Below are positions 15,901-32,919 of a stretch of 64,000 nt of DNA, in pieces. The notes under the pieces were generated by a model. That model worked only from the letters and a program-made list of their open reading frames with translations. It was not told the DNA's origin and did no database searches. Position numbers and translations under genes: made by a program. The DNA is from Anthoceros angustus (lineage: Eukaryota; Plantae; Anthocerotophyta): NCBI GenBank assembly GCA_010909165.1, contig VJWM01000011.1, positions 620,001-684,000 on the forward strand. The letters run 5' to 3'. How positions within the stretch are numbered: position 1 is the first letter of the stretch; every line of letters starts with the position of its first letter.

Positions 15901-16259
15901 GCTAGGGATGCCTTACCCTCTTTTGCTTCACTTACCTAGTTGGATTCTGCGGGCTACAAGCGTCCCTCCTGGATAAGCAATATCGGCAGGTGTAAACGAT
16001 CTGGACTTGGAAACCCCTGTTGGGATGTGCCTGGAAGTGTTTTTTTTGTTTTTTTGGTCGAGTGTGGTGTGAAAATAAGTCAGGTTGACAGTAGGCAGAG
16101 GTATTTATAGAAGATCCTATGTCCTTGGCCTATGGTTTTTTTTCTTGTCTTGATTTTTAGGTTAGAAAATAAATGGGCCGGGAACTTGGTGTTCCTTGGC
16201 CCATGGACTTGGGATGTCCACCAAAAAGTCTATATATGTGAGGTAGGGGGGGTTGGAAT

Positions 16260-19200
16260 AATTAGAGTGTGATAGGTCTATAAGTTTGGGGTCGACCGGA
16301 GTAGGCGAATGAGTGTGGGGTTGTGGATTGGGATGTGGAAGCGGTCGTGAGGTCGAGCAGGAGTAGGGAACACAGGAAACTTAACCCTAGGAAATAGCGT
16401 TCATCCGTTGTGGGCGGAGGAGGAAGGCGGAGGAGCCCAAGGAGGAGGCGGGCGGAGGAGGAGGCGCGAGGCCGGGGTGAAGGCGGCGGGAGTCGGTGGC
16501 GGCAGGCGATTCGGAGGAGGCGCGGGCGCAGCACGAAGGAAGGAGCTCGAACCCCACGGTGACATCGCGCGAGGAGGAGGAAGGCGCGACAGACGTGGCG
16601 CTCCTTGAGGAGGTAGGAACCACAGGCCCGACCCCCAGGGGTGCAGTGGCGTTGGTTTGTGAAGGGAGGCGCGAGGCCGGGGAGGCGTGAGAGGATGGCG
16701 CCCAAGGTCACCAGTGTGCTTGCCCAATGGCCGAACATGGATCATTGGAAAGTTCTCGACGGAGGAAGTGGTGAAGGAGTCAAGCTTGGTTTCATGGAAG
16801 AGCGGTGGAATTACATGAACTTGGGTGGTGCAGAGTGCGCGCCACGAAGGACAAACAAAGGGGGATTTAAAGCCGAGTTGGGACTGGGTGGTTAGGAGGG
16901 TGTATGGGCGCAGAAGGAGGAGGCGGGCGGTTTGGTGATGGAGCCGCCCAAAAAGAGCACGGAAGAAGCAGCTACCGTTAAAGCGGCGACACGAACCCAA
17001 CGGCGTTGACGAGGATTTGGCAACGGCGCAGCTTGATGGGTCCGCCAGTGGCTCCTATGTTTCGCAAAGACAAGAAGTGATTATTTGTCGACCACTTGCT
17101 TCCTTCATGAAGTGGTCAAGGGGCGAAAAATCGATTAGCGAATTCTCTTGACAAGTTGTGTGAAGAGGTTGAACTTGATTTCTCTACCCTCGGCCTCTCT
17201 AATCTCACCATTTCGGTCCATCTTTATGTTTCTAGCGCGGAGGTGGAAATTAGCCTCCCTCCACATGTGGAAGCCGGTTAGGGAGGTGAAATGGAAGGCG
17301 GAGGAGCCCAAGGAGGAAAAATCGGATGGATGGGGAGTCGGTGGCGGCAGGCGGTTCGGAGGAAGAAGGAAATTCCCAGCAAAGGAGGAAGGCCGGGGTG
17401 AAGGCGGAAAGGAGGAAGTGGTGAAGGGACGCGCTGCCACCGTCGAAAACGCGCAAGGCGTAAAATGAAAGCCAAGCGGATGGAGGTGGCGAGAGGAGGC
17501 GCGATCAGGGACAATTTTGCCGACTGATGCGATGATGAATCAACTCCGGAGGGTTTAGGGCGACCTCGAGCGGACCCCTCAAAGATGGGAAGAGATTTTC
17601 AAGGGGACTCCAGCAGCAGGTGGATGCAACCGAATTGGTGAGGTGCGCACTGCCGGGAGGAAAGTTCTCGACGGAGGGATGGCGTCTGGCGGGGCCGCCA
17701 CAACAAGTGGACTTGCGGGGAGGCGACCACGTCGATGATCCGGCCAAGGCATTTGTTGGATCAAGCGGCTTTAGCTCTCACCGCCTGGGCAGTGGGCGAC
17801 GGAGGAAGTGGTGAAGGCCGGGTTTGTGAAGGAGGCCAAGCGCAAGCAATCGGAGGAAGACAAGCGGAACCTAGAAATAAGGGCCAAGATTCAAGAAGAT
17901 TTGTGCGAGGCCGGGAGAAGTTGCAAGCCATGACGAGCCGGGAAGCACTCATGGCTCAAATTAAGGATGCCACAGGCGAACCGGGAGATGCGGGGAGTTG
18001 TTGCGAGCCGGAGGCGGCCTCGGTGGAAAAGGCCCATAAGCTAAGCGGAGGCGATATCATGAGGCGGGATGAGGCACGTGGCGAGCTAGAAAAGACAAAG
18101 GGAAGGGAGGCGGGAGTCGGTGGCAGGACCACCGGCAGTAGCGGAAGGAACTACGAGGAAGGAAGCGAGGTGGCGAAACCTCACCTACCAAGGTTCTTTG
18201 AGCAGACGGCGGTGGAGTCCACTACATGCAGTGAATTGAAGCCGCTCACGACATGCGCATCCAACCCGGAAGGCAGGCATGGGGAGCGGGCTGGCAGGGG
18301 CCTGTGGCGCCGCAAGGACATGGTGTGGGCTATGCACTTCCACAGGAGTTAAGAAATAAGTAGGGTTTGTTTTTAGGATTGAAGGATAAATAAAGGCGGA
18401 AAGGAGGAATAAATTGGGGTAGCGCTTGGACGAGGCTCGGAGTATACTCCGGACTACAGTGAACAACGGACCCGGTACCACTATGGCAAGCTCGGACTAC
18501 AGATAGCAGGATAAGTCAGGAACCCACTCCAGTCAAAGCAGGATAAATCGCCGAGTAACCTAGGAGGCGGGCGTGAGGGCAGACAGGCGGCGCCACGTGG
18601 GCGGCCACAGTGGAGGTCGGGCATGCATGGGCGGGCTTGTGACGGCCGTGGCGCCGCAAGGGACATGGTGTGGGCTATGCACACTTCACAGGAGTTAAAA
18701 TAAGTAGGGTTTACATTTTTAGGATTGAAGGATAAATAAAGGCGGAAAGGAGGAATAAATTGGGGTGGCGCTTGGACGAGGCTCGGAGTATACTCGGACT
18801 CTGGAGTGAACAACGGACCCGGTACCACTATGGCAAGCTCGGACTACGCAGATGTGAGATAAGTCCGGAACCCACTCCAGTCAAAAGCAGGATAAATGCG
18901 TAACCTAGGAGGCGGGCGTGAGGGAGGCAGGCGCGCCCGTGGGCGGCCACAGAGTGGAGGTCGGGCATGCATGGGCGGGCCGTAACCTTGCGAGGCCGTT
19001 ATAGCGGTATTCACGCCCAGCGGGCGCGGCGTAAGGCGAGTAAGCGGGCGTAGGGTCGAGTAAGCCATGCGGACCCTGGCGATTCTGGACAGCGCCTTCC
19101 CCGTTACTTCCTAGCGGCCAAGGAGGAGGTCATTTGCTGCGACCTCGAGCGGACCCCCCTCGGCATGGGAAGAGATTTTCAAGGGGACTCCAGCAGCAGG

Positions 19201-22200
19201 TGGATGCAAGAATTGGTGAGGTGCGCACCTTCTTGGGAGGAAAGTTCTCGACGGAGGGATGGCGTCTGGCGGGGCCGCCACAACAAGTGGACTTGCGGGG
19301 CGGACCCGTCGATGATCCGGGCCCAGGTTGTTGGATCAAGCGGCTTTAGCTCTCACGGCTCGATGTGCGGGCGGGAGGAAGTGGTGAAGGCCGGGTTTGT
19401 GAAGGAGGCCAAGCGCAAACAGCGGAGGAAGACAAAGCGGAACCTAGAAATAAGGGCCAAGATTCAAGAAGATTTGTGCGGGGCCGGGAGAAGTTGCAAG
19501 CCATGGAGCGGTGAGAAGCACTCATGGCTCAAATTAAGGATGCCGGGAGATGCGAGTTGTTGCGAGCCGGGGCGAGGCGGCCTCGGTGGAAAAGGCCCAT
19601 AAGCTAAGCGGAGGCGATATAGAGGCGGGATGAGGCACGTGGCGGGCAGAAAAGACAAAGGGAAGGGAGGCGGGAGTCGGTGGCAGGACCACCGGCAGTA
19701 GCGGAAGGAACTACGAGGAAGGAAGCGAGGTGGCGAAACCTCACCTACCAAGGTTCTTTGAGCAGACGACGGTCGTGGAGTCCACTACCGCGGTAGTTGA
19801 AGCCGCTACTGACATTGGCGCATCCAACCCGGAAGCAGGCATGGGCGGAGCGACAGGACGCGACGTGGCGCCTCGCAAGGACATGGTGTGGGCTATGCAC
19901 TTCCCTGGGGAGTTAAGAAATAAGTAGGGTTTCTGTTTTTTTTTAGGATTGAAGGATAAATAAAGGCGGAAAGGAGGAATAAATTGGGGTGGCGCTTGGA
20001 CGAGGCTCGGAGTATACTCGGACTGAGTGAACAACGGACCCGGTACCACTATGGCAAGCTCGGACTACAGATAGCAGGATAAGTCCGGAACCCACTCCAG
20101 TCAAAAGCAGGATAAATCGCCGAGTAACCTAGGAGGCGGGCGTGAGGGCAGACAGGCGGCGCCACGTGGGCGGCCACAGTGGAGGTCGGGCATGCAGTAG
20201 GCGGGCCGTAACCTTGCGAGGCCGTTATAGCGGTATTCACGCCCAGCGGGCGCGGCGTAAGGCGAGTAAGCGGGCGTAGGGTCGAGTAAGCCATGCGGAC
20301 CCACAGCGATTCTGGACAGCGCCTTCCCCGTTACTTCCTGGCGGCCAAGGAGGAGGTCATTTTGCTGCGACCTCGACAATCCTCACGGTCCCTTGCGCTC
20401 CATAATCCGGCTCTCTGGCGCTATCTTTGGCGCCGATCGGCAAGCGGCGCACCGTCAAGGTTGGAGCGGCGCAGCGAAGGAGGAACATCGTGCCGGCGGA
20501 CTCGGCCGGCGGCTGACAACAAGAGGAGGAGAAGCAATGGCACCCAAAAGCCGGAGTCAGGAGCCATGGACCCTCGTGGGCGCAACATTGTGACCGGCGC
20601 TATCCGGACTTGACCTGGTGGAGGAGGCGGCGGGAGGAAGTCGGGAGTGGCATCGGGCGTGTTCCAAATGGTGCGGACCTTTGGCGTCACTCTAGTCGGG
20701 AGTTTGCGGAAGATCTTGGCGGCGATCAACAAGGAGGTCCGATCAAGAACCTCCGGGAGGACCAGGCGATGGACCTTGGAGGTCGAGGATGGCCTACAAC
20801 CGCGAAGGAGGAAGAAGGGGCGTGGTGCGAGGCCCCTTAAGGCGAAGGGAAGATAGGGCCGGCCAGTGGCGATCTTGAGGCACAGGCAGCGGACAACCAG
20901 CGGATGGTTGATATCCGTCTGGGCGGTCGAGTAAGCGGTAGCCGGATCATTATCCATTGGAACACGCTCACCAAGGTGGATCACCTTGGTGATAACTGAT
21001 AGTATTCACATGCGCTCCGGTGAAGAAGGCGGTGGGAAGGATTATCTTCGCGGTTCGATCGGGAAACCGCAAGCTAAGGCGAAGCCCTCGCCATCGGTGA
21101 CCCATACGATTCATGTATGGGGACATTTCGAGCTCTGAAGGAGGAGAGCTTGAGCAGGCGCTCGGAAGGCTGGAGGCCACCGAGTAGGCGTGCAAGGCGC
21201 GAGGTGGGGGTCGTCCTTGAGACCAAGCGGACTCGGGAGGAGGGGCACGGGAGGATTCGGACTCCATCGTCAGGCGAACCCCTCACCACCCGGGGAAGTT
21301 TGGGAGGAGATTCCCCTTCCCTCCTTTTGGTGCCCCTCGGGCGGTAGGAGGAGGCGTCTGGGAGGCGTTGGCGGCTCGGCCGGCGGGCGGACCAACAACC
21401 ACGTGCCGGGCCCCGCGAACTCAGCGGGGCCGAGGCGGAAGGCGGTGCCGCCTACCACCTCGGAAGGTGCGGTACCCTTACCACCTTGCAGGTGTAAAGG
21501 CGGTGGAGGCGAGAAAGGGCGTGGCCCAAGGCGGAGAGGTCAGCGGCCCACCAGGCAGTCTGTCCCAGCGGAAGGGGCAAAAGAGCTTGCTCCGGACCCC
21601 CTCACCTCCTCAGGGCCCAGGAGAAAGGGCACAAAGGAGTTAGAGGCCAAGAGGGCCAAGAGGGTGAGACTCGGACCTCACCACTCGGGACTGAGGTCTG
21701 ATTAGGTCAGGAGAACCCAGTCCGGACTTACTCGGGGCTGCGGTATGGAGGTCCTTGGCGGACCGAAATGCCGGCTCCACTACGGACTTTGTGGGGGCCT
21801 CACCGTGATGGCCGTGGAAGAAACACGGCGAGTCACAGCTCGTCATGGGCCGGAATGCTTTGGGGTCTCGTAGTGCAGTGGAAGACCCGAAGTGGAGGCC
21901 ACCGGAGGAGGATGGTGGAACTCCAAGAGCAAGTGAAGGCGGCCCGAGGGGCAAAGGAAAAGGCGGAGTCCCTCGCTCGGATCGAGGAAGGAAGCAGCGG
22001 GAGGCGAGCGAGGGCGGCGGAGGCGGCGGAGGCCGGGCCAAGGTTCTTGTCTGAGCAGTGAAACAAGCTCGAGGAGGCGGCGGAGGACCTTGCGGCGAAG
22101 AGCGGAGGCGGAAGAGGCCGGGCACAAGCGAGAGAGCTCGGGACTGGCGGAGGCCGGCTAGGCGGCGCCAAGTGGGAGCCAGTAAAGCGGCGAAGAGTGA

Positions 22201-24050
22201 GCCGCGGCAAGCGGCAGGATCACTCTGAGCGTGATCGGGCCGGTGGAGAGGAGGCGGCGGAGGCGGAGGCTAACTCGAAGGCCGAGCTAACGAGGCGGCG
22301 GAGGAGGAGATGGAGGCCGGCCTCGGGAGATAGGAGATCTCAGTGCAGTGCAGGAAGTAGAGGCGGCGGATGGATGGAGGCAGCAAGGACACCTGGAGCT
22401 ACAACTCCAAGATCGTCGGGGCGGCGGTGATTCTCAGCGAGAGAATCCACGACTTGAGCGAAATAGAGTGCCTCGGCTCCGTCGAAGGCGGAGGAAAATC
22501 GGCGACTATCGAGGTTGGGCGTTGCGAGCTCTGAAGGAGGCGGAGGAAGTCGGGAGTCGGACGGAGGTATCGACCTTTGGAGAGGAGGCGGCGGCTAAGG
22601 CGAGAATGAGCGGAGGCGCGAGCAGGCGAAAAAGGCTGCTGGTCCGGTGAGAAAGGCGGAAGGAGCAGCTGCGCTATGGCGGAGGCGGCGGCAATGGAGA
22701 GGAAGCAGCGGAGGCTGGGCGGTGGAACATGGCAGTGCGAGGGAGGTGACCGAGGCCGCCCTTGTAGCCTCGCGTGATCTGACCGGCTCCGGTATCCGTC
22801 AAATGGCGGGAGGTGGCCCAACAAGCGGCGCCAAGTGGGAGCCAGTAAAGCGGCGAAGAGTCGGGCCGCGGCAAGCGGCAGGATCACTCTGAGCGTGATC
22901 GGGCCGGTGGAGAGTCGGTAGCAGTGAGGCTAACTCGAAGGCCGCTATGAGCGAGCGGCTATGGGAGGAGGAGAGGCCGGCCTCGGGAGATAGGAGATCT
23001 CAGTGCAGTGCGAGGAAAAGGAGGCGGCGAGATGGAGGCAGCAAGGACAGCTGGGCTACAACTCCAAGATCGTCGGAGGCGGTGATTCTCAGCGAGAGAA
23101 TCCACGACCTCGAGCACGAAATAGAGTGCCTCGGCTCCGTCGAAGGCGGAGGAAAATCGGCGACTATCGAGGTTGGGCGTTGCGAGCTCTGAAGGAGGCT
23201 GGAGGAAGTCGGTCGGACGGAGTGTCACGCTGGAGAGGAGGCGGCTAAGGCGAGAATGAGCGGAGGCGGAGGCGAGAAAAAGGCTGCTGGTCCGGTGAGA
23301 AAGGCGGAAGGGAGCTGCGCTATGATGGTGGCGATGGAGAGAAGCAGCGGGAGGCGGCGGAGGAGGCGAGGAGGTGACGAGGCCCTTGTAGCCTCGCGTG
23401 TCTGACCGGCTCGGTATCAAATCTGGCGGAGAGGTGGCCCAACAAGCGGCGGCCGACTCCGGAACACTTATGGCGGAGGGAGTATCGGGTGCTCGGGCAC
23501 CGTGGAAGAGCAATTCAACAAGTCGATTCGGACTTTGCCTATTACCGAGCTCTGAAGCGGTAGAAGCCTCTCGGCGCCCGCAAGCGGCGGACCCTGGAAG
23601 GCTCGAGAAGGAGATGAAGGCCAGGGGCCACAGGGACCCTAGTGGCCTGTTTGAAGATAGCGGAGGCGGCGGAGGCGGCGGAGGAGGCGAGGAGGCGGCG
23701 GATCTCGGCGAGTGGCACCCGCACCTCACCATGGAAGGAGGGCCAGCAGAAGGAGTCACCAGGCGATCGGGAGCAAGTGAGGACTTGAGGAGAGCCACGG
23801 AGGAGTCCGTGAGGAGGAAACCGGGTGGGCGTGAGTCCGGACTTTGTCCGGACCCGGAGGCCGGACCACGAGTCGGACCTCGGTAATAATCCGGACCACG
23901 AAGTCGGACCCGTAATAAGTCGGACCACGAGGTCCGGACCCAGTGAGTCGGACCTAGCCGGCGGACCGAAATAAGCGGACTCACGAGTTGAGTCGAGGCA
24001 GACCTCGAGGGGCCGGGCTGCGGCGGAGGAGCCCCTTCGACTTACGCTAG
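16260..24050 (+). mobile_element. Unclassified GC/purine-rich transposon-derived block with broken coiled-coil ORFs and internal duplications
   Basis: Glu/Ala/Arg-rich plus-strand ORF pieces (17735-18352, ~21900-23750); repeats A(17570)-B(18310)-B(18655)-C-A(19140)-B-C; 22165/22829 duplication; short GGACC repeats at 23850-23990. Confidence 0.45.
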
Positions 24051-24399
24051 GGGAATGGTGGTGGCCCCGGCGAAGGACCCGAGGAGGCGAGGAGGATGGC
24101 GTCGTGGTAGCGGTTGTCGAACCGCCGCCGTATAACGGCAGCGGAGAGGAGGGCCCGCCTCACGGATCATCCGATTGGGTGCACCACAAGCTGTCGGGGC
24201 GAAGTTGGACCACCCATTCCGGCGGGGCCAGGACCTTCCAGCCCCAGTCGGCGAAGGAGATAGGGGAAAAATAGGATGGCCGATTAGGGTATCTGCGGCT
24301 ATCGGCTCGAATAGGGGTGTAATAAAGCGCCTTAGGCGATATAAGAGGTGAGGCTCTAGTAAAGCATCTTTCTCTTGGTGTTGATGCAGCGTTCTTGCG

Positions 24400-27300
24400 G
24401 ACCTTTGTGAGTCTTCTTGCTAACGTGAGTCTGAGTCAGCGAGCACGGCGGCTCGGGAGATTGATCAAGGTCGGTGGCGGACTTAGCAGCGTTGTGGTGT
24501 GTGTAGGAAGGGTGGCGGTGACCGTGCTCGTCCGGGCAGCGGTGCCGCCGCAGGGCAGCGTGTGCGGAGGAACTCGGGAGGCGTGTAGAGCCTAGGCAGG
24601 CGGCGGAGCAGCGGAGGAGGTCGGGCTGCGTAACCAGCGTCTTTTCTAAGGCGAAGAGTGTAGCGTGAGGAGAGAGGAAAGGGCTGATGCGTGAGGATGT
24701 ATGTGAGCAATCTGAATGACGGGTCCTAAGCGTTTAGCCATAGGGCTGTCACGGTGGGCGTTGTGAGTAGTTAGGAGTATGTGTGTGTTGAGGCGAGCAG
24801 GCGCTAAGGGCGGAATCACAGGCAGTAGCGGGCCTATCATTCCCTTGGAGCGGACTTCTTCCTACAGCGACACGGGATTGTCAGCGCCGGTGCCATCGGC
24901 CAAAATCCACGCCACACATGGACCGAGGCAACCGGTGTAGCCCTCTACGGAGGAGGAGGGGTAAGCACCTCGGCAGCAGGGGTCCTATTATATTGCGGCA
25001 CATGGATGAGGAAACTTATGTTCTGGTCTATATGTGAATGGAGAACGCGTGCTTAACTTCATCCGTAATGCGTGTGGAAATAGGAGGATCGGGGCCTACC
25101 TCGCAAGTGAGGACCCAAGTGCATACTTCTACCACTGCGCCAGTGTGGGGTTGGCCCCTATTATCACGGAGGCGACTTTGGAGGAGTTGAGTGAGGAGGA
25201 GGTCAAGCTTGGGTGGGCGAGGCAGTGTAATCCTCGGCAATAGGCGGCCCGGAAGATCACTGAAGCTCCGATGATGCACTCAAATTCAGACGTCCAGTGA
25301 TGCAGTGAGGTGGAAGTAGTGGGCTTTGTCAGGCCAGCGTGGCGGAGAGCTCGTGGCGGCAATGGAGGCGTGGGGCAGGCGGCCAAGTCGAGGTAGGCAG
25401 CCTTGAGATAAGCGTAGGTAGAGGTGATAGCATCCTAAAGATAATTTGGTTAGGGTCTTTGCCTTTGGACCTAGGATCGCTCCGAATCGTGGGCGCGTCC
25501 TTCATGATAGCCATCTTAAGACACGAAAATCAGGGCATGGCGCCCCCAACGATGTATAAGAGGGCAACTTATGTCCTCACAGAGATAATTCGTTGAGATC
25601 CCCACGCATGGGCGGTTGGAGCGTCAATTAGCGGGCGGGGTGTGCGAGGCGCCCTAGGAATGGTCGAGCTTGCTCACTGTTGGGGAAGGGGCGATCAAGT
25701 GTCTTGCTGACCAAGGGGAAGGGGACCAAGAGGCCGGCGCGGGGCGGGTCTGGAGCTTGCTCGTAACGCCTGCTGTGTCGCTCTGGACTCCCCTCCCCTT
25801 CGCTTCTTTTCTCGCCAGCCGTGTTCTGAAATTGAGAGTCTGTGAGTGAGAGGATGCCTGGAGGGTGAATCGAGAGAAGGAGAGTGAGAGCAGATCGGGA
25901 AAGGAGAGACTAAGTGCTGTACGCGATGCGAGGTGCTGAAATGTGAGTGGAAAAAGAGGAGAAGAACCGTGGAGGGGATGTGGTTGGAGTTGGTGTGAAG
26001 GAATCGCGAACTGAGTCAGTGCTGTTTGGAAGAAGTGCGCATGGGAAACGGTGTTTCCTGGAGGAAATAAGGCGGTGCGGTACCTTTGTGTGTGAATGTG
26101 CATGTGTGTGGATTGAGTGTGGAGTGGGCTAGGAAACCCTAGTGTCAGGAAACTGGCTGGGAATAGTATCCGGGGTAGAGAATTATCCAGGCCACGGGGC
26201 AGGACAACTCCGTACCCGAGGACCGCGGCGCCGTAAGTCGAATCAGCCGTTAGGGTTTGGCGTGGGACCCACCTCGGTGGTCGTACACTACCGGGTAGTG
26301 ATGCGGACTTCCGCGGTAGCAGAAAGGGAACGGGGTCGGGAAGTTAGATTCGTGGTAGTTGGATAAGGAAGAAGGTAGTCGTAGTTGAGTGGATAGGTGC
26401 GAGAAGTGGTAGCGGTCTAGTCCAGGCTTAGGCAAAGGTTGGTAGTGATAGAAGATAGCGTCTTTTGGCACAAACCATTCCCTTGGGAGCGAATCCCAGG
26501 ACTACAACGACATTGAGGGTAAATGTGGACCTCACCGTGTCCCACGACACGAGTTTACACCCCACAGCAGGCGCAAGTGGCCCTTCTTCGAGACTCGTCC
26601 CTCCCATGGTGGCTCATCCCCGTCTCCACTCTTGCTTAGGTAAGGGAGCAGGTTCATGGCTTCTTGCTCAGCCTTGCATCCAGGCTTTCCGAATTGCACC
26701 AACCTCTTTTTCTACCGCAATGAGGTTTCACCTACGCCTGGTCCAGCCTTTGGCCTGCTCTGTCCAGGCTTGGAGCTGTGGGGCACCCCTAGACGACTCG
26801 GGACCCACCTTGCTCACTGTCCCGCGCATTGCTACACATGACGTCGTTCGCGACGTCATGTTTTCTCTGGCCAAGGAGGGAGGTTTCTTTCCCTATAGGG
26901 CGCGCCCTTATACTCTGCCTAACAGTTTCCCTCCATATGGATCTTTTTTTAGCCCAGGGGGACTAGGTTTTAGTTGCAGATGTGGTTGTCATTGACCCTA
27001 GTCGGGATTCCGTGAATGAGCATATGATGCTCAAGCCTCCCGGAGTGGGCAATGGAGGACGTAGGCCGGGGCCAAGTCGAGTAGAGATAAGCGTAGGTAG
27101 AGGTGATAGCATCCTAAGATAATTTGGTTAGGGTCTTGCCTTTGGACCTAGGATCGCTCGAATCGTGGGCGCGTCCCTTCATGATAGCCATCTTAAGACA
27201 CGAAAATCAGGGCATGGCGCTAACCCGATGTATAAGAGGGCAACTTATGTCCCTCACAGAGATAATTTGGTTGAGATCCCCACATGCTGTGGGTGGTTGG

Positions 27301-28150
27301 AGCGTCAATTAGCGGAGGCGGGGTGTGCAGCTCCTGGAATGGTCGAGCTTGCTCACTAGAGGGAAGGGGCGATCAAGTGTCTTTGTGACCAAGGAAGGGA
27401 CCAAGAGGCCGGCGTGGCGGGCTTGCTCGCTTGCCTGTGTCACTCGGACTCCCTCCCTTCGCTTCTTTTCTTGACCCGTGTTATTGGGAGTACATGGTGG
27501 GAGAGGATGCTGGAGGGTGAATCGAGAGAAGGAGAGTGAGCGGATCGGGAAAGGAGACTAAGTCTTTGTCTGTGATCACGAGGTCTTTGAAATGTGAGTG
27601 GAAAAGAGGAGAAGAACCGTGGAGGGATGTGGTTGGAGTTGGTGTGAAGGAATCATGAGTAGTCGAGTCTTTGTTTGGAAGAAGTGCGCATGGGAAGCGG
27701 TGTTTCTGGAGGAAATAAGGCGGTCGGTACCTTTGTGTGAATGTGCATGTGTGTGGATTGAGTGTGGAGTGGGCTAGGAAACCCTAGTGTCGGGAAGCTG
27801 GTGGGAATAGTATCCAGGGGTAGAGAATTATCCGAGGCCCGCAGGCGGGACAACTCCGTGCAGGGACGAGTCATGGTAAGTCGAATCGCCGTTAGGGTTT
27901 GGCGTGGGACCCACCTCGGTGGTCGTACACTACCGGGTAGTGATGGGACTTCCAGTGGCGAAGGGAGCAGGGGTCGGAAGTTAGATTAAGTGGTAGTTGG
28001 ATAAGGAAGAAGGTAGTAAGTAGTTGGTGGATAGGTGCGAGAAGTGGTAGCGGTCTAGTCAGGGCTTAGGCAAGGTTGGTAGTGATAGAAGATAGCGTCT
28101 TTGGCACAAACCATTCCCTTGGGAGCGAATCCGGGACTACAACATTGAGG
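24400..28150 (-). mobile_element. Degenerate LINE-like remnants (endonuclease end, linker, RT start), partly duplicated
   Basis: Minus-strand KPGLDRYHF...SSLSNYH (RLDRF/SDH-like) and RSDPRSKGKDPNQIIFRMLSPL (PK.GKDP...RPISL-like); 25355-27040 is repeated at 27045-28640. Confidence 0.4.
26600..27030 (+). mobile_element. CRE-clade non-LTR retrotransposon C-terminal fragment (Zn knuckle plus RLE start); copy at ~28230-28640
   Basis: AMRFHLRLVQP...CGAPLDDSGTHLAHC...THDVVRDVMFSLAKEGG...ADVVVIDP, homologous to the element at 51.3-52.4 kb. Confidence 0.6.
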
Positions 28151-28831
28151 GTAAATGTGGACCTCCGTGTCCCACGAGTTACACCTGACGCCGTGGCCCT
28201 TCTTGAGACTCGTCCCTCCATGGTGGCTCATCCGTCTCCACTCTTGCTTAGGTAAGGGAGGCGGGTTCATGGCTTCTTGCTCGGCCTTGCATCCAGGCTT
28301 TCAGTGCACCAACCTCTTTTTCTACCGCAATGAGGTTTCACCTCGCCGGTCATGCCTTTGGCTCTGTCAGGGCTTGGGTATGGGGCACCTGGGCGACTCG
28401 GGACCCACCTTGCTCACTGTCCCGCGCATTGCTACACATGACGTCGTTCGCGACGTCATGTTTTCTCAACCAAGGAGGGAGGTTTCTTTCCCTATAGGGC
28501 GCGCCCTTATACTCTGCCTAACAGTTTCCCATATGGATCTTTTTTAGCCAGAGGACTAGGTTTTAGTTGCAGATGTGGTTGTCATTGACCCTAGTCGGGA
28601 TTCCGTGAATGAGCATATGATGCTCAAGCCTCCGGAGTGGACAGCGGAGGGATGTTCCACGGCAAAAATTCGTAAATACTCTCCTATGCAGCAGGCGCGC
28701 GCCTTCATTTCCTCGCCATCGAGATCCATAGGCCATGGGCAAGGCCTTTTCTAGGTTTCGTAAGACCTGTACCAGGGAGTACCACAGTCTTAAAACCTGT
28801 ACCAGGGAGTACCGCAATTGCAAGAATGAGG

Positions 28832-28938
28832 TTGGCCGCCACAACGGGGTTAGTCCCCCATGGTCCGCCACAACGAGGTTAGTCCCCTTGGTCCGCCACA
28901 ATGGGGTTAGTCCTCCATGGTCCGACACAGCGGGGTTA
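28832..28938. repeat. ~28-bp minisatellite (4 units), with the interrupted unit resuming at 32487-32505
   Basis: Unit TGGTCCGCCACAACGGGGTTAGTCCCCCA; the last unit is split at TTA by the Harbinger compound. Confidence 0.85.
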
Positions 28939-29615
28939 GGGCGGATTCGCATGAACCCGCTTCCGGCTATGTTCAGTAAGTTTTTAACGTGGCGGGGCGT
29001 CCGCATGTAAAGTGGCAAACCGAACCCGAAACTTTTCGCAGCAGGTCTCCGGTGTCTTCACACACGGGACTGAAGACATAAGCCTGGCATTCTCTCCTAG
29101 GTTATCAAGAAGAATCTTCCACTCCTAGGTTATCAAGAAGAATTGGTGCACGTCATGAGCTCCTCTCAAAATCGCTAGACAGGCGAAATGTGAATTTGCA
29201 GATCTAAGTGTTGAAAACCCAAAATGAACACCGGCTATACCCGGGCTGCACTGGATGCAGCCCGTCGTAGCTTCTTTCCAGAGCCGGAATCGATTACAAC
29301 CACCTTAGGGCGGATTCGCATGTGGGCACCTCCGCTTCCGGAATGACATTTTGGCAGAAAAGGGCCCGCCACGAGACCATCTTTAGCATCTGAGGCCTTG
29401 CCCTATGTTTACGGTAGGGGGCTTTTTAGGTGGTTGTAATCGGTTCCGGCTCGGGAAAGAAAGCTCTGACATGCATCACAGTGCGGCCGGGTATATGGTG
29501 TTCAACATTTTGGGTCTTCAACGAGATGCAAATTCACATCTCGCGAGGAGCTCTCTCGCGAGTCTCGCGATTTTGAGAGGAGCACCAATTCTTCTTGATA
29601 ACCTAGGAGTGGAAG

Positions 29616-30770
29616 ATGGAGGCGACCACAAGGATTTGCTTCTTCCTCCAGCGTTCGTTGGTCATCAAAGGCATTATGCATGGTGCCTTCTCACCGTATG
29701 TCTTGCCCATAGATTTACGCCATTGGAGGTCAAGCTCCTCTCAAGAAGAGAGTGAGCCCAGGCGAACTACATGTCTTGCAGTGCAAAACGTGAAGATTTT
29801 GATCGACACCAAGCAGGTGGCACCAAGGAAAGGACCAAGACAGCAGCAGTCCGTTGGGCTGCCATTGTAGCTTCTTGTGCAAAACATGGGGTCAACAGGT
29901 CTGCCCGCCAGTGTCAGGAGAAGTGGGACTCTCTGTACTCTGATTTTAAGAAGATAAATGATTACCAGAAAGCGATTCCATCTGGCCAAGATGGATATTG
30001 GAGCATGGACAAGAAGTGTCGAACACAAGCTAGCCTCCCTGCAAAGTTTTTCTACCAGATTTTCGAACACATGCAGTCATGGCTCCAGCAAAGCAGAGTT
30101 GTGAATCCAGGCGGGTTGATCTTAGATTCAGGAGAGATGAACAATGCAGGTACAGCCACTCCAAGCTACAAATCATGAATTGAGTTGAATTTCCTTGTTT
30201 GTGGTTAGATTTAATTTGCTTTCGTTGTGTGCACGTGTTGACAATTTTGGCATACCTTCAAGTGGTTCAGTACAAAGGGATGAGGATTTTGATTTATTTG
30301 GACACCAGAATCCTACTGTATCTGAAGGAATGCCGAGCAGTTGTTGTCAACACACTGATGAGGACGTGGACCCACGGAACCATGGGACACCAGAACCTAC
30401 TAGGACACCAGAAACTAAGAGTACTGGTGTCTCACCTGCCAAGACCAGCACTCAAGGGAAAAGGCGGAAAGTAAGAGGCAAGTCATCAGAAGGTGTTCTC
30501 TCTACTTTGAGGAGTAACAACCAGGCCTTGGCATTGGCAGCTGCTGACACTAGTTGTGATAGAAGACACGCAGAATTGGTTCAACATGATCAACGTAGGC
30601 ATGAAGATATCGTACAGTTGGAGAACCACAGAATCGAGATTGATTCACAGAAAGCTGCACTTTATGTGTCAGCACTCAAAAGCATAGGTGAGAACATCAG
30701 ATTCGTTGGAGTGTATAGCAAAATCCAACAAGCCTTTAGAATGACGATTTTGTCTACTATAAAAAGTTGA
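29616..30770 (+). CDS. Harbinger MYB/SANT (trihelix) DNA-binding protein, 2 exons; 5' part frameshifted
   Basis: AKREDF...VRWAAIVASCAKHGVNRSARQCQEKWDSLYSDFKKINDYQ trihelix; GT-AG intron ~30150-30240; C-terminal coiled coil; start uncertain. Confidence 0.8.
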
Positions 30771-30775
30771 CTTGC

Positions 30776-32150
30776 CTAGGAAGTCTCTATTGATTCACAC
30801 GTGTACAACATTAGTGTTTCTCTCAATTTGTGGGATTCTTCAGCATTGTCTCCTTCGTGCCTTTCACCTTGCATGTGCACTCTTCTCTCGGGAACATATC
30901 CTTCAAACAGCCTGCAGTACTCAGGCTCACCATATTGGAGACGTATGTTATGCAAAATGCAACAGGCATATGTCACTTCAGCGAAATATTCAGCTGAACC
31001 CCTCCATACTTTTCGTCCAAGTATACGCCAGATGCATTTAAGTTGACCAAAGGCTTCCTCCACTATCATGCGAGTGGAGGACTGCTTGAAATTAAAAGAA
31101 TCCCACTGAGCTGATAGCTGCCTTCCAGGATATGGTGTGACAACCCAAGGCATGTCGGGATACCCGGCATCCGCCACAATGTATTCCCGAACCACACCTG
31201 TACTGAGTTGTAAGACTGGACCGTTCAAGCATCTTCCTGAACATGCATCAGCATACAACGAGCTGTTGAAAAATTCTACTATCTGTGGCATTTCCAGGCC
31301 ACCCAGTGACTACATCAAGGAAAGCTTTGTCGGGACCTACAACTGCCTGCAAAGCCATGGTGTAGGTGCCATACCTACCATACCAATCCGTGATTAGCGA
31401 GCCTGCAGGCAATTCAATGGTGAAATGAGTGGTGTCAATTGCACCACAACAATTCACAAATCCATGTTGAAGTTGAAAGCCTTGCTTGATCTCTGCGAAC
31501 CTTGGAGCAGTTGGCCACTGTAGGTGATGTTTGCCACGCTGCAAAATAGAAGTCACGAATCGACGACAAACATCGAAGGCCGTGGACGAACCTACACCAA
31601 ACAACTCACTGAGGGTGCGGTAAGAATCCCCAGTTGCAAGTCTTCGGAGAGCGATTCCAACTTGCTTCTCAACTGATAAAATTCTCCCTGGGATATTTCG
31701 GAAGCTAAGAATTTCTGTGGGTTGGAGGTCCACTGCAACCAGCGAACACAAGTAATAGAAAGAATCAGGCTTGAAGCGGTAGAACATAGCAAACCTAAGC
31801 GGATCCTCTCTTGCAACCAGGTTGTGGTGAAGGGAAAAAAGCCCATCCACTCTCGGCTTAATGTAATACTCGCCGTATTGCACCCCATGAAGCATTTGGT
31901 GAGAGATTCCTGATACACGCTGCAAGTGAGCTAGAAGCATTGTGATATCAGACTGTAAAGAGTGCAACACGGTCTCTAATTCTTCGAATTGGGCATCTAC
32001 ATCAAGTGGAGAAGAATCATTTGTCGACCGTCGCCTGCAATTACAACGATGAGGCCTCAAAACAATGGCATTAAAGGAATCAATTACTGCAAGGAGACCT
32101 CCAAGCAATGGTAGCAGACTCTCCATTTCAAACCAACAGAGCATCGGCCG
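30776..32150 (-). CDS. Harbinger DDE transposase (HARBI1/DDE_Tnp_4 family), one frameshift near 31275
   Basis: LSVEKQVGIALRRLATG..., GAIDTTH, LQAVV...VTGWPGNATDSRIF / NSSLY, ADAGYP...PY, RMIVEEAFGQLK..W, CCILHN; start approximate. Confidence 0.9.
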
Positions 32151-32919
32151 AGAATGCCAGCTTATGTCTTCAGTCCCGTGTGTAAAGACACCGGAGACCT
32201 GCTGCGAAAAGTTCCGGGTTCGGTTTGCCACTTTACATGCGGACGCCCCGCCACGTTAAAAAACTTACGGAACAGAGCCGGAAGCGGGTTCATGCGAATC
32301 CGCCCTTACCCGGGCTGCACTGGATAGCTTCTTTCCAGAGCCGGAACCGATTACAACCACCTAAAAAAAGCCCCCTTACCGTAAACATAGGGCGGGCCTT
32401 CCGTATGCTAAAGATGGTCTCATGGCGGGCCCTTTTCTACCAAAATGTGATTCCGGAAGCGGAGGTGCCCACATGTGAATCCGCCGATAGTCCCCCATGG
32501 TCCGGTGCCCTCCTCAGGGTTGTTCCCCCTTCTCTTGGGGTAGATGGTTTTCCCATCTCTTTTTCATGATAAAATCTCCTCCTCACATTACACAACATAC
32601 AGTTTGTCCTCAAAACAGTTTTCAATGCCCACAGCAGAGATCAAATCCAGGAGAGATCTTCACACAGCCGAGTAACAAATGTTGGTTGGCGTTCATGCTT
32701 TCAGATCTTCAGAAATTAGGAGGCTCCATGCCTCCTGTTTTCTGACAGGGAGCAAAAATGTGGAGGATGTAGCCCTCATGAGTCATGACCACAGCCGCAG
32801 GAGACTTCCCTGTCAAGGAATGAGAGACTTCTCTACAGGTTTACTGAAATCACAGCTAGAATGCCTATCTAAATCCGCACCGAATAAATTGGAACACACA
32901 AAGTGAACTGAGCGACCAA

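Follow-up and report, generated by a model that had tools for sequence, protein, structure and literature searches.

At this locus we found a nested insertion of an ordinary kind within a single PIF/Harbinger family, in which a gene-bearing element that looks dead (the inner element) lies inverted inside a shorter relative (the shell). Two successive cut-and-paste insertions probably made it. In the first step, a ~0.5-kb non-autonomous element made up of ~157 bp of right end and ~310 bp of left end would have entered a TTA in a minisatellite; the shell would then have gained a 68-bp internal tandem duplication, the junction of which created a new TTA, and finally a 3.0-kb gene-bearing relative, encoding a Myb-like ORF1 and a DDE transposase, would have inserted at this new TTA in the opposite orientation. 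Since the insert is oppositely oriented, every segment common to the shell and the inner element is an inverted repeat, and the hairpin that results is a by-product of this geometry which is unlikely to have been selected and bears no sign of a selected function. The repeats, target-site duplications, protein domains, frameshift, divergence pattern and folding energy were observed, while we infer the order in which the insertions took place, the logic of the promoters and whatever small RNAs may result.

Layout of the two elements

The sequence-only reading had described four TIR copies, one of them slightly degenerate, and we found that the 15-nt TIR, GGGCGGATTCGCATG, is present exactly at 28939-28953 (+), 29308-29322 (+) and 32291-32305 (-), while a fourth copy at 32472-32486 (-) carries two mismatches, the first base being changed from G to C and position 11 from G to A. 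The inner pair, formed by the second and third copies, is perfect over its 15 nt, and the outer pair, formed by the first and fourth, matches at 13 of 15 positions. In the window, that is, the whole 64-kb stretch of DNA analysed, the TIR has seven matches with three or fewer mismatches against 1.97 expected, a number reached in none of 100 shuffles. The remaining three matches, with three mismatches each, look like chance occurrences.

The hallmarks of PIF/Harbinger are found at this locus (Table 1): both the inner and the outer TIR pair bound an element, the target-site duplications (TSDs) are 3-bp TWA sequences (TTA/TTA for the inner and TTA/ATA for the outer element), and a Myb/SANT-like DNA-binding protein is encoded as a second gene. 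When joined, the flanks of the outer element restore one unit of the 29-bp minisatellite. The shell is 547 bp long, has no genes, and consists of a right and a left end fused together, inverted relative to the inner element. Three inverted homology blocks connect the two, in exactly the geometry expected for nesting, with one family member inserted inverted inside another as in a double-Ds-type composite; shell positions 28933-29094 match inner positions 32150-32311, inverted, at 95.7%, and shell positions 32326-32485 match 29309-29465 at 91.4%. At the deletion junction of the shell lies a tandem duplication with a 28-bp period, its 22-nt exact copies occupying 29094-29115 and 29122-29143. Inversion of a single element is ruled out, as two elements are needed to account for the four TIRs and for duplicate ends that have diverged. 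Two further descriptions in the sequence-only reading hold as well, namely that an inner TIR pair with TTA duplications encloses the MYB and transposase genes, since TTA is seen on either side and Pfam finds both domains inside, and that inverted arms of ~190 bp flank a ~120-bp loop at the MYB start, the spacer of this closest inverted pair measuring 122 nt with the inner TIR inside the loop.

Table 1. Coordinates of the features of the nested locus, given as positions in the window.
Feature	Position	Strand	Basis
Inner PIF/Harbinger element, 2998 bp, perfect 15-nt TIRs	29308..32305	+	Sequence, TIR search, Pfam
Myb/SANT-like ORF1 gene	29616..30770	+	Pfam PF13837 (Myb_DNA-bind_4), E 7.7e-11; frames; splice candidates
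DDE_Tnp_4 transposase gene, tail-to-tail with the Myb gene	30776..32126	-	Pfam PF13359, protein alignments
Shell right end: TIR 28939-28953 plus ~142 bp subterminal	28939..29095	+	151/155 aligned bases identical to inner right end 32150-32305
Deletion junction: right end joined to left-end position ~310, CTC common at the join	29094..29143		Alignments
Terminal part of the shell left end (positions 1 to ~178), degenerate TIR 32472-32486	32309..32486	-	154/174 aligned bases identical to inner 29308-29494
Arm 1: shell copy of left-end positions ~121-310, inverted	29114..29305	-
Arm 2: left subterminal region of the inner element (presumed promoter with 5' leader), up to the Myb ATG at 29616	29428..29617	+
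Direct duplication of shell sequence, left copy, 68 bp	29238..29305
Direct duplication of shell sequence, right copy, 56 bp	32307..32362
Inner TSD	TTA 29305-29307 (left); TTA 32306-32308 (right)		Sequence
Outer TSD	TTA 28936-28938 (left); ATA 32487-32489 (right)		Sequence
Minisatellite, 29-bp unit, ~3.6 copies, target of the outer element	28832..28938; unit resumes 32487-32504		TRF, repeat family

The genes of the inner element

When its exon pieces were searched against Pfam, the Myb gene matched PF13837 over profile positions 27-88 only, and its 84-aa N-terminal piece had no Pfam match. The frame that opens with the ATG at 29616 stops at 29870, the frame encoding the Myb domain opens at 29771, and a second exon frame extends to 30770, with a candidate intron at 30150-30270. 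A frameshift near 29800-29830 is probable. The transposase is likewise split between two frames, the pieces of which match PF13359 with E-values of 6.3e-09 and 3.3e-15, by one extra base in or beside the A5 run at 31269-31273. Since the two pieces abut when aligned with homologues, with no residue missing, an intron is ruled out in favour of a 1-nt frameshift, which, lying in a homopolymer run, could be a sequencing error. Mobility with either TIR pair, as had been suggested earlier, is doubtful, and the locus looks immobile now, judging from its frameshifted transposase, its probably frameshifted Myb gene and the mutated tip of the outer right TIR, which has lost its terminal G.

The alignments with homologues also revealed that acidic residues are kept at all three positions of the D, D, E motif, so the triad is present in this copy. 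Among the homologues aligned, the second D is missing in four members of one alignment and the E in all eight that are full-length. The best protein relatives of the transposase are plant Harbinger-derived nucleases of the ALP1-like and HARBI1-like kind, at 37-49% identity; compared with these, the copy described here keeps its TIRs, TSDs, partner Myb gene and acidic D, D, E positions; it is a transposon copy and not a domesticated gene. The protein search with the transposase returned nothing above 49% identity and hence no close copy in that collection, the exact ORFs of the inner element were absent from a collection of 15 billion proteins, and exact-pattern scans of metagenome contigs, using either the TIR with a subterminal motif or a 40-nt right-end block, gave 0 matches. 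With 28800-32600 as query, BLAST across the window yielded self-matches only, and a Pfam search of the flanking ORFs between 22 and 36 kb gave nothing usable from which to name the promoter of a flanking gene.

Order and origin of the insertions

The outer ends have accumulated three changes in TIR and TSD together and the inner ends none, and this greater decay of the outer ends fits an outer insertion that came first and an inner one that came later. Divergence between the shell and the inner element is uneven, amounting at aligned bases to 2.6% in the right end and 12-20% in the left end; similarity to the inner copy is ~98% for the shell right end together with a block of 36 nt that precedes the Myb ATG, and 80-88% for the remaining left end. 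From this difference between the ends we conclude that the shell comes from a diverged or mosaic lineage and is not a recent derivative of the inner element itself. Hence, of the earlier proposal that a Harbinger lies inverted inside its own deletion derivative, the right-end/left-end layout and the foldback stand, but 'its own' does not agree with the left-end divergence. Moreover, since the copies of the direct duplication agree at 55 of 56 bases, the right ends at 151 of 155 and the left ends at 84-88%, most of the left-end divergence would be older than the nesting.

The 56/68-bp duplication, the copies of which differ additionally by a 12-bp indel, bears directly on how the inner element arrived. 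Its junction provides the TTA used as the inner insertion target, and a model in which the tandem duplication came first reproduces both inner junctions with 0 extra mutations. An exact hit on this junction has a chance of about 1 in 15, given 15 equally likely TWA sites in the shell, and this figure, together with the match of the duplication edges to the inner TSDs to the base, speaks for an alternative in which the composite and the duplication came from a single aberrant event, be it repair synthesis, alternative transposition or a non-concerted integration that placed the two ends ~70 bp from each other; for Ac, alternative transposition is known to make duplications and inverted composites (PMC3744419). 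We nevertheless consider a single event unlikely. Its long-TSD version, by non-concerted integration, is disfavoured because it requires two extra substitutions, TAA to TTA and ATA to TTA, in the trinucleotides abutting the element, whereas duplication first requires none. The left ends of the shell and the inner copy differ by 12-20%, which means that the two were no sister copies when the composite formed, and Ping/mPing, the best-studied PIF/Harbinger system, is without local hopping (PMC7584900).

The nesting by two insertions, which we prefer, has the same layout as double Ds (maize Ac/Ds, hAT superfamily), where one Ds is inverted inside another Ds and 'left' and 'right' termini are brought close together in direct orientation, as are those at 28939 and 29308 here, 369 bp apart. 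Nested Ds elements are reported to gain chromosome-breaking properties and to occur rarely, which is probably due to selection against them (PMC3260210; PMC7584900). The present locus differs from double Ds in being PIF/Harbinger with a 3-bp TSD and in combining diverged partners of unequal size, 0.5 kb for the shell and 3 kb for the inner element, in place of identical copies; furthermore, Ac hops locally, unlike Ping (PMC7584900), and the resident transposase here is frameshifted. Same-family nesting of PIF/Harbinger is already known from Medicago truncatula, where in MtPH-M-2-IIa, as here, an older related copy was the target of a later insertion of the family, and where non-autonomous copies are internal-deletion derivatives and some elements have ~60-bp internal tandem repeats (PMC2213677). 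MtPH-M-2-IIa, however, is a mosaic of 21.7 kb that contains a retrotransposon, and a tight foldback at a gene start is not described there (PMC2213677).

The foldback and the silencing reading

The two arms are 76.8% identical over 203 columns with gaps and 83.9% identical at aligned bases, with five indels. The longest perfect duplex between them is 36 nt and another is 22 nt, both right before the Myb ATG, and given the overall divergence of the arms a 36-nt perfect run is unexpected (P ~0.008). RNA folding of 29114-29617, which the sequence-only reading had put forward as a check, gave strong folding, with -303.9 kcal/mol against a shuffle mean of -163.9 (z -21.5). The shell right end carries the sequence that lies upstream of the transposase gene and is directed rightwards into arm 1; RNA polymerase reading from it into the arm would produce a transcript that folds, and dicing of such a read-through transcript is possible. 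Small RNAs from inverted TE repeats are common in plants, so that the description as an inert by-product may fall short of what the hairpin yields.

These properties raise the question of a functional 'killer', in which RNA across 29094-29617 would form a hairpin whose Dicer products silence the Myb promoter and leader of the family in cis and in trans, post-transcriptionally or through RNA-directed DNA methylation. The strong folding, the perfect duplexes before the Myb ATG and the orientation of the shell right end all point this way, as do precedents in two other superfamilies: Mu killer silences Mutator (PMC3440606), and the p1-ww-id alleles ('Ac killer') silence Ac (10.1101/2020.01.07.897926). 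What this locus has in common with both maize loci is a natural inverted duplication that takes in the 5' portion of a DNA transposon with a TIR, and from which a neighbouring or an element promoter could transcribe a hairpin. In the known killers, however, the arms are near-identical, of kilobase scale and inclusive of coding or transcribed sequence (in the Mu killer type, that of the transposase gene), and dsRNA, siRNAs and heritable silencing in trans have been demonstrated, whereas here the arms are ~190 nt long, 77-84% alike and made of non-coding 5' sequence only. We judge a functional killer quite improbable. The 21 transversions against 7 transitions between the arms give no sign of selection for pairing, such as a wobble-preserving bias, and no cytosine-deamination signature of long-term methylation. 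Rfam found no known miRNA or hairpin family over 28500-32900, the single match being to a lncRNA at chance level (E 0.6), and the frameshift has already inactivated the resident element, so that silencing is not needed here. Very unlikely is the extended proposal of a first PIF/Harbinger killer, in which a 5'-end inverted duplication would be transcribed from the transposase-side shell promoter and diced, with the 36-nt block as the trigger of heritable family silencing. An assembly artefact, in which the inverted layout stems from a foldback chimera among the reads or from the collapse of a repeat, is extremely improbable even though inverted chimeras are generally known in long-read data, because foldback artefacts have identical arms whereas the paired segments here differ by 2.6-20% plus indels, and because proper TSDs lie at both element boundaries and the outer flanks restore the minisatellite unit.

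For the first recognition of an active DNA transposon by a genome, few cases are known; they come from maize and are all inverted duplications. With its ~500 bp, the self-nested Harbinger of this hornwort offers a cheap and well-defined setting for learning whether such a trigger also operates in another superfamily and in an early-diverging land plant. If the killer reading were true, the precedents, so far in Mutator and hAT, would come to include a third superfamily and, with a bryophyte, a non-seed plant. For annotation, the locus comprises two elements and not one and includes a pseudogenised transposase, and its internal duplication may confuse TE callers.

Architecture of the nested elements

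The reading that fits the locus best is an ordinary nested insertion, in which a now-defective Harbinger, the inner element (29308-32305, + strand), lies within an older, diverged non-autonomous relative, which we call the shell. The nested inverted structure described by the sequence-only reading is real and was correctly described, with its four terminal inverted repeats (TIRs), its target-site duplications (TSDs) and three blocks of inverted homology, the last delimited by self-BLAST and a repeat finder. As the alignments show, the shell runs wholly opposite to the inner element and consists of a family right end of ~157 bp, fused at ~29095 to left-end position ~310 and returning from there to the left terminus. 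At the junction, CTC is common to both sides and a tandem duplication of 28-bp period occupies 29094-29143; the shell without the inner element and one TTA measures 547 bp. Nesting in opposite orientation also generates two wider inverted pairs, one formed by the right ends at a distance of 3.07 kb and the other by the left termini at 2.86 kb. BLAST found no further copies of any part of the shell or the inner element in the 64-kb window.

Features of the nested locus; divergence counts (last three rows, shell versus inner element) comprise aligned bases only
Feature	First position	Second position	Identity	Detail
Inverted homology block, right ends	28933-29094	32150-32311	95.7%	
Inverted homology block, left termini	29309-29465	32326-32485	91.4%	
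Inverted homology block, foldback arms 1 and 2	29114-29305	29428-29617	76.8%	over 203 columns
15-nt terminus GGGCGGATTCGCATG	28939-28953 (+); 29308-29322 (+)	32291-32305 (-)	exact	
15-nt terminus GGGCGGATTCGCATG		32472-32486 (-)	two mismatches	
Flanks of inner TIR pair	29305-29307	32306-32308		TTA and TTA
Flanks of outer TIR pair	28936-28938	32487-32489		TTA and ATA
29-bp minisatellite	28832-28939	32488-32504 (continuation)		~3.6 units
Divergence, right ends			151/155 (97.4%)	transitions/transversions 2/2
Divergence, left terminal part			154/174 (88.5%)	transitions/transversions 10/10
Divergence, foldback arms			146/174 (83.9%)	transitions/transversions 7/21, plus five indels

With up to three mismatches allowed, the terminus matched the window seven times against 1.97 expected, a number reached by none of 100 shuffles; the three further matches, with three mismatches apiece, look like chance occurrences. 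Since the outer flanks are the end and the continuation of the minisatellite, excising 28939-32489 restores one repeat unit. Two tandem 30-bp units, 90% alike over the 29 nt aligned, lie directly upstream of the minisatellite (28758-28816), so that the transposon inserted among short tandem repeats. In like orientation, the two insertion sites share the context C-GGG-TWA-G (28936-28938/32487-32500 and 29295-29307/32306-32320; TWA is the TTA/TAA-type target trinucleotide), which hints, from these two sites only, at a target preference extending beyond TWA. An internal TIR-like motif, GGCG-GGGCGTCCGCATG, lies in the right subterminal region (28994-29006 and 32238-32250), and CCGCTTCCGG is common to both ends a few bases inward of the TIR; both are candidates for sites at which the Myb or transposase proteins bind.

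Its layout makes the locus the Harbinger equivalent of double Ds in maize, in which a family member likewise lies inverted inside another, and here a left-type and a right-type terminus stand in direct orientation 369 bp apart. Chromosome-breaking properties have been reported for nested Ds, which is reportedly rare on that account (PMC3260210). Among PIF/Harbinger elements, tightly linked mPing copies generate rearrangements, and Ping is without local hopping (PMC7584900); the members described from Medicago include same-family composites, internal-deletion derivatives and elements with 60-bp internal tandem repeats (PMC2213677).

Divergence of the shell and a proposed order of events

The shell had been taken for a deletion derivative of the inner element itself, and a fresh derivative of the present inner copy it is not, most of its left-end sequence being 80-88% identical. 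Divergence is significantly lower in its right end than in each of the two left parts (Fisher P = 2e-5 and 0.002); between these, the left terminal part and the arms, it does not differ (P = 0.28). Since the first ~210 bp of the shell, comprising the right end and the block before the Myb ATG, are ~98% like the inner copy and the remainder 80-88%, the shell is a mosaic, possibly through family-level constraint on the ~98% segments or possibly through recombination. The longest perfect duplex between the arms spans 36 nt (29114-29149 with 29582-29617; the next are 22, 17 and 15 nt), and a perfect run of at least this length has P ~0.008 under a random spread of differences. The 36-nt block that immediately precedes and takes in the Myb ATG (29582-29617) is identical in shell and inner element in surroundings of ~80%, and its 22-nt core, with a CCTAGG palindrome, has three copies at the locus (29094-29115, and within 29114-29149 and 29582-29617). 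Within the family, this block might serve as a protein-binding site or as a leader element.

The TTA duplications reported around the inner pair of TIRs are present on both sides; what the sequence-only reading overlooked is a direct duplication of shell sequence that also flanks the inner element, at 29238-29305 (68 bp) and 32307-32362 (56 bp). The two copies are identical at 55/56 positions, differ by one 12-bp indel and share shell-specific variants relative to the inner element. Tandem doubling of the 68-bp unit makes a new junction TTA (unit end ...CCACCT, then unit start TACCC...). A 68-bp tandem duplication inside the shell would first have created this TTA, into which the inner element would then have inserted with an ordinary 3-bp TSD, and this model reproduces both observed junctions with zero further changes. 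Integration of the two transposon ends ~70 bp apart, followed by filling in of the gap, calls for two additional substitutions located precisely in the trinucleotides that abut the element, and we therefore prefer duplication first, then insertion. Under the preferred order, the shell's 15 TWA sites make an exact hit on the duplication junction a ~1-in-15 coincidence, which remains a mild oddity; the 68-bp duplication at the insertion point is unexplained but explicable. Nesting seems to have occurred only a short time ago, the duplication copies differing by just 1.8% and the right ends by 2.6%; if so, most of the left-end divergence would predate the nesting.

Coding capacity of the inner element

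The DDE_Tnp_4 Pfam profile matched the minus strand in two pieces, 31248-32231 (profile 1-62) and 30776-31291 (profile 75-158). Aligned to plant homologues these adjoin with zero residues missing, so that the frame is broken by a shift of one base within or next to the A5 run (31269-31273), a shift that may alternatively be a homopolymer sequencing error; an intron between the pieces was ruled out, since they adjoin without residue loss. Acidic residues occupy all three catalytic positions, which we placed by what we take to be the family motifs (AID-T-H, GWPG-x-x-x-D and E-x-A-F-G); the second D is absent from the four plant homologues of one alignment and the E from 8/8 full-length homologues aligned. 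The nearest database relatives are plant ALP1-like/Harbinger nucleases, at no more than 49% identity. On the plus strand, a search covering the separate ORF1 pieces matched Myb_DNA-bind_4 (Pfam) at 29771-30178 with E 7.7e-11, at profile positions 27-88 only, and the frame opening at ATG-29616 is without a Pfam match and stops at 29870. From this partial profile and early stop, ORF1 is probably frameshifted too. An intron with donor 30150 and acceptor 30271 could plausibly connect the Myb frame with that of 30195-30770.

The foldback and a possible silencing role

The RNA of 29090-29620 is predicted to form a single long, imperfect stem of -303.9 kcal/mol (shuffles: mean -163.9, sd 6.5; z -21.5), strong folding being expected of any inverted repeat. 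The arms are far from perfect and non-coding, representing the presumed promoter and leader of the inner element up to the ATG. Their differences are transversion-rich, with no enrichment of changes that preserve G-U pairs and no C-to-T excess of the kind expected from long-standing cytosine methylation. Judging from orientation, the sole promoter proposed would be the shell right end, which faces arm 1 and contains the sequence preceding the transposase ATG (32126). An Rfam search returned no known RNA at the hairpin. Precedents for the suggested 'killer' function are Mu killer (PMC3440606) and two Ac 'killer' alleles (10.1101/2020.01.07.897926), which have kilobase-scale, recently formed arms with transcribed sequence, and for which dsRNA, siRNAs and heritable trans-silencing were demonstrated (PMC3440606; 10.1101/2020.01.07.897926); the Harbinger locus has geometry alone in common with them. 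No Harbinger 'killer' was found in the literature searched, and this reading would be new if true; the evidence gives it little support, and we regard a silencing role as a testable hypothesis of low prior.

In the neighbouring 16000-28000 region, Pfam searches of long ORFs gave zero matches. These 12 kb have a strong strand asymmetry, with GC skew of +0.16 to +0.33, AT skew of up to +0.30 and GC content of up to 64%, and contain only small tandem arrays, with a 346-bp unit at 18354-18986 and a 29-bp unit at 23860-23941.
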